A DNA stretch of 62,904 bases, the filler included, from Olpidium bornovanus S191 (taxonomy: Eukaryota; Fungi; Olpidiomycota), in NCBI GenBank assembly GCA_017911155.1. It is 27 parts of 27 records of this genome, joined end to end, with 100 filler letters (N's around TTAATTAATTAA, not from the genome) between each part and the next. Parts side by side here need not be neighbours in the genome. Positions count along the whole stretch, not along the records: positions 44,079 to 46,138 come from JAEFCI010001298.1; 26 more parts are not named here. One strand, 5' to 3'. The notes under the pieces are model-generated. The model was not told the origin of the DNA and did not search any database. It saw only the letters and a list, made by a program, of their open reading frames with translations. Below are positions 3,252-46,238 of the stretch, piece by piece. The first letter of the stretch is position 1. Each line of letters opens with the position of its first letter. Both the position numbers and the translations under genes were made by a program.

Positions 3252-4995
3252 CATGGAACGGTGGGCAGACCTGCAGCCCTTGCTGACCGACTTTTGTCCT
3301 CTGCTGTGCTACCTGAAAAATTTGTTGGCTTTGGAGTGCCTGCTGCCCAAAGGGGTGCTGGCCAAGTTGTGTATCTTGCTGAAAGACCTGGTAACCTTGC
3401 GAACCAAGCCGAAGAACCGATCCGGCCCCGCAGGAAGAAGTCAGGAACTGGTTTCCGGCGGAAGAGGCCGGGGGCGGTATATGCTGCACGCTGTACTGCT
3501 GTCGCTGCTGCTGCTGCTGCTTGTGTTGCTCTTGCCGGTGGTGATTGTCGGCCGCCACGGCGGGACGCGGGTTTTCCGACAACAAGATCGGCCCGCTCGG
3601 ACGGTACGTGTGCGCGGCTGCGTGGCCGCCGCCCTTTAGCGGATCTCTGTCTTCGCTGATCGCGGCCTGCCGGTTGCGTTCGCGGGCAGCAGGGGTGCGC
3701 GCGGCCGACGCGACGGCCGGCCGAGCGCGATGGCAACCTGCCGCCCGGCCGGCCGCGTCGCCTTTCGCAGCTAACTTGTTCTCGACCGCGGCTGCTGCCG
3801 CCCTGCCCGCGGGCGGCTTTTCCGGTTCGACAATGCCCAAACCCGCACCAGCGAGCTGCGGGTCTTCGTGTGTTCCGCCGGCGCTTTTTGCCCGCAGAGT
3901 CGACGGGACCGGCCCCGGCGCTTCCGCGTGAGCCGCGCAACCGTCAGGGCGCTGGAGGTCGTTACGCTTGCGCACGCCCGCCTGCCCGCTCAGTTTGGTG
4001 ATTATGCGAAGGCTCTTCTTTTTGGACGGGCCGGAAAACCTTTGTCGGATTTCAAAATTTTTCGCAGCTCGTAACGGCATATGCCATCCCGGTAAAGGCA
4101 CACTCGAAACGGACAGCCTACCGGAACGCTCGGGTACTGCGAAACCTGGTTGAAATCGACCGGCGGCCGGCCGCTCACATTCGTTCCGCACTGCCATTCA
4201 TTGTTTGCGAAAATCGCCGTCCGGTCGTATTTGGGGGAAAAGCAAGCGGATCAGCTCCGCGGTTTGGGAGTTTGCCATCGCAACCCGCTTCCCCCCTTCC
4301 CCATGGCGCCGGGGCGGGAAGGGGTGGGTTGCGCCAATTTTTATTATTATTATTATTATTATTACTTACGGTACACCAGCCCTCGTCGTCCTTGGTATCT
4401 TCGCCGTCCGGGCTTGGGCTCCCTCCGACGGCGCTGCCTGCTCCCGACATGCGTCGGTTTATTTTTCGGCGATTACTCTCGGTGTCAGCGGGGAAGGGGC
4501 CCAGGATCCGTTTTGCTGCCCGCAATCGGCGGGGTCCGACGTACCCTGGCCGAGTCTTGAGCACCTCTTCGATGAAATAACGGGACGGTTCCTCCCTTTC
4601 GACACGTTCTTCCGGGAACCATTCGGTCCAGTCGCCGTCGACGGGCTGCCGAGTTCGTAACGTCGCCCCCAAAGAAGTTTGGCTGGCTGACGTCTGCCAT
4701 CGTCCGGACCAGCGCCTGCTGCCGCCGCCGCCCTCCGCCTCCTGCCCGACCTCGTCCTCTTTTGATGCAACCAATTGACGAGCACCATGACGGTGTCGGC
4801 CTCCATGTCGTCCAACGGCCGGCCGGCCAGTTTGCCCATTTCTTCGCGCGGGATTGGCGCGACGTCCCCGCTTTCGCCATCAGAGATTAGATCACCGGTA
4901 TCATAACTCTTTACGGACCTGCCGCCTCCTTCTCCTTGGTTCTCCTCGACGCGGTTCGGCGGACGTCCGACGGCTACGCCTTTGGAAACGCCCAT
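3252..4995 (-). CDS. Hypothetical low-complexity protein fragment (acidic, Ala-rich and poly-Gln segments)
   Basis: Chained minus-strand ORFs 4459-4995, 4175-4774 and 3196-4197 with QQQQQRQQY and Q-rich tail; no family recognised. Confidence 0.4.
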
Positions 4996-44078: not shown

Positions 44079-45501
44079 AACCGGAAGCCCCGCGTGTCTA
44101 GAAGTGTGGCTGTCTTCTTGTGCATATACCTACCCGCTGTCTGGGGTGACAATACGGAATCCTTGATTCCATCACCCCAATACCTCAATTTCTAAGAGGG
44201 TAACCTGGAGGAAAACAAGGTCGCGCGGGGGCGTTCTTCAATGGTTTGGTTAAATCGTTCCACGATGCCATTTTGCTCGGGGGTATCGCATATAGTCAAC
44301 TGGGAACAAATACCGCACGTGTTCAAATAGTCAATCTAATCTCCAGACATATATTCCCCCCCCCCGGTCCGTGCGATAGATTTTAATTTTCTGCCCTGTG
44401 ACGCGCTCAATAAAGGCTTGAAAAAGTTTGAATGCGGTAAGTAAAATCCAGGTGTCGTGGGAGGGAATTGTGAATGATTTTGCGTAGCGTGCGGAATGCT
44501 CGATGTACATTACGATGTACTTGGAGTTGTCGTGACCGAGTGGGAGCAGTCCGACGACATCCGAATGGACGAGTTCGGCTTTGGAATAGACGGTGGTGCT
44601 GGCGGGATGGGGGTGTCTGGTGTGTTTGCGAGTGTGCAATTTTCGCAGTGATTAGTATTGTCGGGAAGAATGCGAATTTTTGGCATACCTTGCACCATAG
44701 TCTGGACGCGCTGAAAGTTTTTAAATCCTAGGTGACAGAAACGCCGGTGCCAGATATCGACGTCGGGCTGGCTGACGGACAGGGCGACCCGGCCCAGCTG
44801 TGCCTCTTCTCCGGCGCCGTCTGCATTGGGGTTCACTGCGGCATCCGTGTCCAAAGGGGGAGCCTCGTCTAGGACGAAGAGATCTTGCGGCGTGCGGTGG
44901 CGGCGGGCGATTATGGCACCGGCCTTGTAAAAAAGCACGGAGCCGTTTGGCTCGAAGATGATACGGATTCCCTGACGAGTGGTTTTGCCTATCGACAAAA
45001 GGATATGTCGAACGTTAGGAGCGTATAGGACATTACGTACCTTGAGGGGACGCTCGGAACCGTGTACGCGGATGGTGCCGATTTCAGCGGTCGAGGAACC
45101 CTCATCGTCGGCGTTGGCCGTGTAGAGCTTGGTCGTTTGTGAGGTGTCTAGGGAGCTGAAACGCAAAATGTCTGGAGAACTGTGATCAGTAGCACCGCAG
45201 TCGAGAAGGATCTGCGTGCGGCCGTTTATGCGCACTCGATTTACCCGATTCACGACAGTGTTCAACAGAACGGCATCGGCCGGCGGATCGGGTGCGCGTT
45301 CTGGTTCGGCATTTGCGTTAATGTTATTCGCCCGTGGGCGAGGTGGATTGCCCCTCTTGTTCTTCGGTTGCGTCGGGACAACGCGTTCCGAGGTGACCTT
45401 TCCGTTTGCAATGCCTGAAATTACTTCAGACCAGGGAATTAGTTGCCTGGGTCGGAATTTTCGAAGAAAAATTATTTTGGGGGGGAGTTTTGCAGGGTAA
45501 C
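44079..45501 (-). mobile_element. Ty1/Copia gag-pol remnant (protease, GAG-pre-integrase, integrase)
   Basis: ILLDCGATDH (protease); NVLYAPNVRHILLSIGK; DIWHRRFCHLG...CENC (Zn-binding); ELVHSDVVG (integrase); QNGIVER on the minus strand; frameshifts near 44630 and 44360. Confidence 0.95.
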
Positions 45502-45517
45502 TGTTGCGCATCAAAAG

Positions 45518-45933
45518 TGGGCTGACCGAGGGTCGAACTCGGGACCTTCTGTAGTGGACACTCTATTATTCCCTCATTCCTCCGCCCAACACATCGCCTT
45601 CTATCGCTGTACTGTTTGACCCCGATGCCTCCCGTTCGACCTCAAGGCTTTCCGTTCGCTCTCGACGCTTCCGTTCGATCCCGAGACCTCCCGCTCGATC
45701 TCGAAGCCCTTCGCTCGATCCCAATGCTTTTGCCCGACTTTGATACCCACCGCTCGAGCTCGACGTAACGCCCGCTTCTCCCTATTGTTGGGCTCCAATC
45801 GAGGGGGGCCCCTGTACCTAAACCCCTGGTGTCCCCCCTCTTCTAATAAACACAAGAACCCTTTGCCGGACACACCACACCCACAACACTTCCCTGTCCA
45901 GGAGGGACGCTCTACCAACTGAGATATCTGCCC
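45518..45933 (-). tRNA. tRNA-like sequence inside the TRIM 3' LTR (interrupted; not a functional tRNA)
   Basis: GGGCAGA TA TCTC AGTTGGTA GAGC G TCCCT CCTGGAC AGGGA AG|GTC CCGAG TTCGACC CTCGG TCAGCCC A, then CTTTT. A partial second copy at 46138-46093 has loop CCGGGAT. Confidence 0.85.
45550..45888 (+). mobile_element. Solo LTR (339 bp) with 4-bp target-site duplication
   Basis: TGTAGTGG...CCACAACA termini (7/8 inverted match); CTTC duplicated at 45546-45549 and 45889-45892; AATAAA at 45845. Confidence 0.85.
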
Positions 45934-46064
45934 TATTCACCAAGTGTCTGGCTCGCCTTGCGAAGCCATTCCAACACCCCCCCTCGAGCCAGGCACCTCA
46001 GGCACTGCTGTCAACGGGGCTCAGCCACCCGCGCAACCACAATCGGAGGGACGAAGTCACGATT

Positions 46065-46076
46065 GGGCTCATAACC
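46065..46076 (-). promoter_or_regulatory. Primer-binding site complementary to the tRNA(iMet) anticodon arm
   Basis: Plus strand GGGCTCATAACC equals the initiator tRNA anticodon stem-loop sequence, the Ty5/copia half-tRNA priming type; directly abuts the LTR terminal CA. Confidence 0.88.
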
Positions 46077-46238
46077 TGTTGCGCATCAAAAGTGGGCCGA
46101 CCGAGGGTCGAACTCGGGACCTTCCCTATCCCGGAGGGNNNNNNNNNNNNNNNNNNNNNNNNNNNNNNNNNNNNNNNNNNNNTTAATTAATTAANNNNNN
46201 NNNNNNNNNNNNNNNNNNNNNNNNNNNNNNNNNNNNNN

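Follow-up and report, generated by a model that had tools for sequence, protein, structure and literature searches.

The DNA analysed here is a window of 62,904 nucleotides from the assembly of Olpidium bornovanus S191 (GCA_017911155.1), in which parts of 27 records are joined end to end. Positions 44,079 to 46,138 of this window come from record JAEFCI010001298.1 and will be hereafter referred to as the piece. The piece, which has a G+C content of about 55%, carries on its minus strand a short element organized as an LTR retrotransposon. The element lies within the remains of a Ty1/Copia retrotransposon and is itself split by another repeat (Table 1). It comprises the end of a 5' LTR, a PBS, an interior, a PPT and a 3' LTR, in the minus-strand order described in a first-pass annotation of this DNA. 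The 100-bp non-coding interior of that annotation was also recovered. The interior measures 100 nt with the PBS and the PPT counted in; the PBS begins at its first base and the PPT finishes at its last.

Table 1 Features of the element and of its surroundings, in window positions.
Feature	Positions	Strand	Remarks
5' LTR tail, last 62 nt (LTR 71-132)	46077-46138	-	ends CAACA; cut at the edge of the piece
PBS GGTTATGAGCCC	46065-46076	-	complementary to the anticodon stem-loop of initiator tRNA-Met (half-tRNA primer)
Interior spacer, non-coding, 79 nt	45986-46064	-	without an ORF of its own
PPT GAGGGGGGG	45977-45985	-	motif; wider 13-mer GCTCGAGGGGGGG at 45989-45977
3' LTR part a (LTR 1-88), 88 nt	45889-45976	-	starts TGTTGGAATGGC at 45976
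A-box-like TATCTCAGTTGG	45926-45915	-	motif
Nested repeat, 339 bp, TGTTG..CTACA	45550-45888	-	splits the 3' LTR
GAAG 4-bp duplication, second copy	45546-45549	-	first copy at 45892-45889
3' LTR part b (LTR 89-132)	45502-45545	-	ends GATGCGCAACA at 45502
B-box-like GAGTTCGACCC	45540-45530 and 46115-46105	-	motif, one per LTR copy
3' flank GTTAC	45497-45501	-	expected half of a 5-bp TSD; other half beyond the piece
Degenerate Ty1/Copia fragment	44198-45496	-	insertion host of the element; end of gag, protease barrel, pre-integrase, start of integrase core

The LTRs are terminal direct repeats with TG..CA ends. The 3' LTR runs from TGTTG to CAACA, and the 5' tail likewise ends with CAACA. The LTR can be described as composed of four parts, which are a leader of about 43 nt, a tRNA-derived module of 74 nt with an A box and a B box, a TTTT run, and a tail of 11 nt. 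Part a of the 3' LTR consists of the leader, which is U3-like, followed by the 5' part of the tRNA-like module [45933-45889]. Part b contains the T arm with its B-box-like motif, the 3' strand of the acceptor stem, the TTTT run at 45516-45513 and the 11-nt tail that leads to CAACA. The tail of the 5' LTR comprises the 3' half of the module, TTTT at 46091-46088 and the CAACA end. In both copies, the TTTT run follows the module immediately and the LTR ends 11 nt further on. A 49-nt direct repeat pairs 46124-46076 with 45549-45501 at 98% identity, and the two LTR copies are identical at 59 of the 62 positions where they overlap. The three differences are a T vs G at anticodon base 34, a C vs T at loop base 38 and an A vs G in the acceptor stem; they include the two that had been claimed at first reading, in the pseudo-anticodon (TGG vs GGG) and in the acceptor stem. 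For the open frame that crosses the element on the plus strand (45944-46138), the homologue search found none.

Contigs of four public sequencing runs, the soil metagenomes X1 and X2 and the organism runs X9 and X10, were aligned to the piece, and they clarify the structure of the 3' LTR. The first-pass annotation gave this LTR as a unit of 132 bp. That length is correct once 343 bp are removed, but the unit is not contiguous as it stands, since the 339-bp repeat splits it. Excision of the nested repeat together with one copy of GAAG joins 88 nt to 44 nt and restores an LTR of 132 nt. One X9 contig joins 45545 directly to 45889, skipping 343 positions, with 4 letters that fit both sides. This contig has an uninterrupted LTR, so the 4-bp duplication and the 343-bp removal are independently supported. 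The nested repeat, which contains four tandem units of 19-20 bp at 45630-45707, occurs in many copies and many different surroundings in each of the four runs, and loose contig ends with differing flanks are seen at its termini, 45550 and 45889. It is probably the solo LTR of another element.

In the rebuilt LTR, ARAGORN calls a cloverleaf of 74 nt at LTR positions 44-117. Its anticodon is TGG (Pro-like) in the 3' LTR and GGG when the tail of the 5' LTR is substituted. Dinucleotide shuffles of the rebuilt LTR gave an ARAGORN call in 0 of 2000 cases. The cloverleaf of about 73 bp proposed earlier is thus present in the rebuilt LTR, but on the uncut sequence ARAGORN calls no tRNA, because the nested insertion splits the module. 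The Rfam tRNA model, applied to the uncut sequence, reaches 18.8 bits against a cut-off of 29, with a partial match that begins at 45933 and is made from the 5' half and chance letters. The A-box-like motif, the B-box-like motif and the TTTT terminator that had been reported are all present, and the B-box residues GTTCGANNC are intact. The A box of the window copy, TATC..TGG, is one change away (G10-to-T) from TRGCY..YGG, and a T:C mismatch in the D stem gives the A box TATC instead of TAGC. The acceptor stem has a mismatch, A:A (or A.G), and the anticodon loop has C33, where a tRNA is expected to have U.

A working tRNA-Pro gene was considered and is improbable in view of C33, the stem mismatches and the anticodon, which is unlike in the two LTRs. 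The same features, together with the A box of the other copies described below, which is canonical, are consistent with the earlier view of the cassette as a promoter rather than a decoding tRNA. Self-priming at the PBS was considered as well, but between the tRNA-like module and the PBS region no complementarity of at least 6 nt was found. Likewise, no such self-priming complementarity was found in Helenus, and in most Helenus families, though not all, the tRNA-like part encodes no working tRNA (Kojima 2024, PMC10886601).

The Copia fragment that received the element has Pfam matches to Pol_BBD (5.9e-10) and gag_pre-integrs (2.2e-08) and a weak match to rve_3, and it contains frameshifts. Its best relative among 1.8 billion representative proteins is P0001, with an identity of 38%. 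The alignment with P0001 puts the insertion point near residue 385 of a polyprotein of 1600 amino acids, near the end of gag, and the element appears to have inserted into a Copia element close to where gag and protease meet. For the Copia ORF of the window, no homologue was found within the length range searched, and an exact-protein look-up matched nothing on record. The integrase frame breaks within 44340-44370 (minus strand), near a run of eight G, and a related X1 contig has single-base length differences at 44356 and at 44663-44666. This Copia copy is a pseudogene. At 44197/44198, a third repeat [44079-44197], which has a summed depth of several hundred in X10, takes the place of the remaining Copia integrase, and contigs diverge at this point. 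With the rest of the integrase replaced in this way, the piece is a nest of repeats. The Copia fragment has the 8-mer AGGGTAAC at either end, at 44197-44204 and at 45494-45501 (plus strand). Both times the 8-mer coincides with a junction to another repeat, which may be due to chance or record a rearrangement.

None of the runs contains the whole piece. Between 48 and 84 contigs per run match it in X1, X9 and X10, and 13 in X2, with a likeness of 85-100%, and the summed contig depth falls almost entirely on the element and on the 339-bp insert. In X1, X2 and X10, contigs lead from 46132 directly back to 45901; this distance of 232 equals 132 + 100 and thereby also supports the removal of the 343 bp. 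In X1, this join is a contig of 262 nt, which we read as a 232-nt cycle with an overlap of 30 (k-1), taking k = 31; its two pieces have 0 and 4 differences from the window. The 232-nt cycle of LTR and interior has a high assembly depth in three runs. The join shows that the tail of the 5' LTR continues into the first part of the LTR, and that the PPT and the PBS bound the LTR. Loose ends, at which the consensus agrees poorly, are located exactly at the LTR start, 45976 (X9), and at the LTR end, 46076-46078 (X9 and X10). Such ends, at the exact limits of both the LTR and the insert, mark the termini of two different repeats in many contexts. Furthermore, a contig of the host Copia family in X1 and X2 matches the flank as far as 45499, beyond which its sequence is different (loose end at 45484). 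This contig serves as a paralogous empty site, whose limit lies 2 nt from the LTR end.

The element is therefore a dispersed multi-copy family, as seen in samples other than the source genome. No contig of X1, X2, X9 or X10 showed a complete copy, with its two LTRs and a target duplication. Pattern scans for more copies gave 0 matches with two patterns in metagenome contigs, two in viral contigs and one in contigs of bacterial and archaeal genomes; these collections hold little or no host DNA, so the result carries little weight. The other copies in the four runs have the canonical TAGC A box, for example ATAGCTCAGTTGGTTAGAGCG, and keep the B-box region, while they vary most in the region of the D arm and the anticodon arm. 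Thus the promoter parts are conserved and the decoding part is not, a pattern that fits selection for a promoter and not for decoding.

We consider it likely that the window contains an inactive copy of a Helenus-type TRIM (TRIMp3), a non-coding element of 364 bp with two 132-bp LTRs and a 100-nt interior that holds only a PBS and a PPT. The first-pass annotation had described a miniature LTR element with a tRNA-like cassette in its LTR and a half-tRNA(iMet) PBS, and this description agrees with every structural test that we ran. The window copy itself is probably old and dead: its LTRs differ at 3 of 62 positions, its A box is mutated, its 3' LTR is split and its host Copia has decayed. The G10-to-T change in the A box, which is absent from the other copies, points in the same direction.

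A mechanism for such an element can be proposed by analogy with Cassandra and with the proposal of Kojima. TFIIIC and Pol III would initiate transcription at the tRNA-like module in the 5' LTR. Some transcripts would read through the weak T4 stop, for which leakiness is assumed, and would continue across the PBS, the interior, the PPT and the leader. With their 3' ends at the T run in the 3' LTR, they would have the tRNA-like module as the terminal repeat R. The sizes implied by this scheme are about 78 nt for R (the module), about 11 nt for U5 and about 43 nt for U3. The RNA would be packaged by Copia Gag, with RT and integrase also supplied in trans. The 5' half of initiator tRNA-Met would prime the minus strand at the PBS, and the PPT would prime the plus strand. 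Integrase would then act on the TGTTG..CAACA ends, and a 5-bp duplication would be made. In the window copy, the insertion of the 339-bp repeat into the 3' LTR would be a later event.

The position of the T run is an awkward feature for this scheme. Four Ts directly behind the module would terminate Pol III within the 5' LTR if they did not leak, and genomic RNA made by Pol III would have to pass them; in yeasts, four Ts are a weak Pol III stop. Together with the imperfect A box of the window copy (TATC for TAGC), the T run could speak for an ordinary Pol II-driven TRIM, in which the tRNA-like module would be a passenger, such as a captured SINE or tRNA retrocopy, without a role in transcription. 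We regard this as unlikely, because the other copies, variable as they are in the anticodon arm, retain the B-box region and a canonical A box, and because the 43 nt or so of LTR upstream of the module offer little room for a Pol II promoter and R. Moreover, the same layout is found in the fungal Helenus LTRs inspected, and for Cassandra, its 5S counterpart, transcription from the Pol III promoter has been reported (PMC10886601).

The Helenus-type reading calls for a Copia partner, and a candidate was found through P0001. The gene for this protein lies on the Logan contigs L001 and L002, which represent an autonomous Copia element with an LTR of 104 bp (L002, 62-165). Its PPT and LTR start, GCTCGAGGGGGGG followed by TGTT, are identical to those of our element at 17 of 17 nt, and so are its LTR end and PBS, CAACA followed by GGTTATGAGCCC (17 of 17 nt). 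Outside these junctions with the PBS and the PPT, the two have no similarity. The same PBS, in the same placement, is also found in the Copia loci L003 and L004. The identical junctions indicate that the cis signals needed by RT and integrase are of Copia type, and the L001/L002 lineage may be the partner. Against this, P0001 is only 38% identical to the Copia fragment of the window, and an iMet PBS and TG..CA ends are common in Copia generally.

Some features of these Copia loci can be described separately. P0001 and P0003, the latter encoded by L004, are Ty1/Copia proteins with RVT_2 and the domain order PR-INT-RT. Both have a chromodomain after the SH3-like domain of the integrase (Pfam Chromo, E 2e-13 and 1e-14, respectively). 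Chromodomains are a hallmark of the Ty3/Gypsy chromoviruses. The 104-bp LTR of L001 and L002 is unusually short. L003, a metagenome contig, contains two Copia gag-pol genes head to tail with an iMet half-tRNA PBS before each (476-486 and 4417-4427), which suggests a tandem array with a shared LTR.

The autonomous elements also bear on whether the element forms a family of its own. It could instead be an internally deleted derivative of an autonomous Copia with the same tRNA-like module in its LTR, since TRIMs can originate by internal deletion (PMC10886601) and the element is located within Copia-rich sequence. However, the autonomous Copias L001-L005 have no tRNA-like part in the DNA examined, and the 232-nt cycle is present at high depth in three runs. 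The processivity of Pol III is held to make LTRs shared with autonomous elements unlikely (PMC10886601), and we find this origin quite improbable. A chance, locus-specific arrangement, in which a tRNA pseudogene was duplicated beside unrelated LTR debris without any mobile family, would suit the single incomplete copy of the window and the empty pattern scans of public collections with little or no host DNA, but it can hardly be upheld against a unit on dozens of contigs in four runs whose flanks change exactly at the TGTTG and CAACA ends, with PPT and PBS adjoining the LTR and a paralogous empty site within 2 nt of the LTR end.

If the element is a Helenus-type TRIM, its host is of interest. 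The published fungal hosts of Helenus are Pucciniales and three Agaricomycetes, and an age of roughly 130 My has been proposed for Helenus in Pucciniales (PMC10886601). We tentatively suggest, as a possibility somewhat less likely than not, that the host lies outside these Basidiomycota lineages, as the first-pass annotation implied in speaking of a zoosporic fungus, and that the partner may be the chromodomain Copia lineage with the short 104-bp LTR and the 17-nt junctions. With a family from a different host, TRIMp3 would have a wider known range. If the host does lie outside those lineages, either the pairing of tRNA-promoter TRIMs with iMet-half-primed Copia would be much older in fungi than these 130 My or so, or there would have been an independent second origin. 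The matching junctions would also provide a concrete pair of TRIM and partner with which the pick-up of Pol III-made RNA by Copia proteins could be tested. Moreover, such elements spread tRNA look-alikes through a genome; these raise the apparent number of tRNA genes and can bring Pol III promoters to new places. In rust fungi, Helenus copies make up most of the tRNA genes predicted for several of the most expanded isotypes (PMC10886601). For annotation, tRNA-like matches of this type in the source genome should be masked as repeats.

Comparison with other retroelements places the element more precisely. Its PBS predicts a primer, initiator tRNA-Met with its anticodon stem-loop, that is also used by Ty5 of S. 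cerevisiae and copia of Drosophila (as cited in PMC10886601), but Ty5 and copia are autonomous elements of 5-6 kb with Pol II promoters in their LTRs. With the tRNA-derived SINEs (SINE2), the likeness is an A/B-box tRNA-like head, from which Pol III presumably transcribes a short retroelement that codes for no protein. SINE2 elements lack LTRs, a PBS and a PPT and depend on LINE machinery for their copying, whereas here the module sits in LTRs bounded by a PPT and a PBS. Identity with a SINE2 was rejected for this reason, as the module is repeated within the LTRs and there is no tail repeat. Cassandra, a plant TRIM, and Ajax, from a nemertean, are likewise non-autonomous miniature LTR elements with the promoter of a small RNA gene in each LTR (PMC10886601). 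Their module is, however, derived from 5S (box A, IE and box C) and not from a tRNA, and their hosts are different.

The closest match is Helenus. The name denotes TRIMs with a tRNA-derived sequence in the LTR, while TRIMp3 denotes TRIMs with a Pol III promoter; Pol III transcription from the LTR is so far a proposal in the published Helenus families as well (PMC10886601). The precedent invoked in the first-pass annotation is thus real, and it corresponds closely in architecture, sizes and PBS. Fungal Helenus have LTRs of 106-284, interiors of 51-354 and full lengths of 311-724 (PMC10886601), and the 132, 100 and 364 of our element lie inside these ranges. Helenus-4_PTrit, with an LTR of 130, an interior of 95 and a full length of 355, is similar in size. 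The anticodon loop of iMet is the commonest primer type in fungal Helenus (PMC10886601), and the 12-mer GGTTATGAGCCC occurs 48 times in Kojima's consensus file, in 48 consensus interiors. The Helenus internal portions inspected begin with GGTTATGAGCCC, and the Helenus LTRs inspected have TGT..ACA ends, with the tRNA-like part near the 3' end and a T-rich tail after it. As far as these entries go, both have short TGT..ACA LTRs in which a tRNA-like module containing an A box and a B box precedes a T run and a short tail, and in both the interior extends from GGTTATGAGCCC to a G-rich PPT.

Mobilization by Copia has been inferred for both. Fungal Helenus are characterized by a 5-bp duplication and by a PBS that fits a tRNA anticodon loop, mostly that of iMet, as in Copia; the PBS of our element agrees with this. 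Close copies of the present element occur in soil metagenomes. The tRNA-like part of Helenus-2_CCin has about 68% identity by eye, which is no more than unrelated tRNAs share and gives no ground for homology. Six motifs were taken from the start, the end and the T-arm region of our LTR, and Kojima's consensus file contains none of them; a literature search found no later papers that extend Helenus to other fungi. On the match to Helenus and the absence of the six motifs, our element does not represent a new class; judged by its sequence, it is a new family of a kind, Helenus/TRIMp3, that was already described in 2024.
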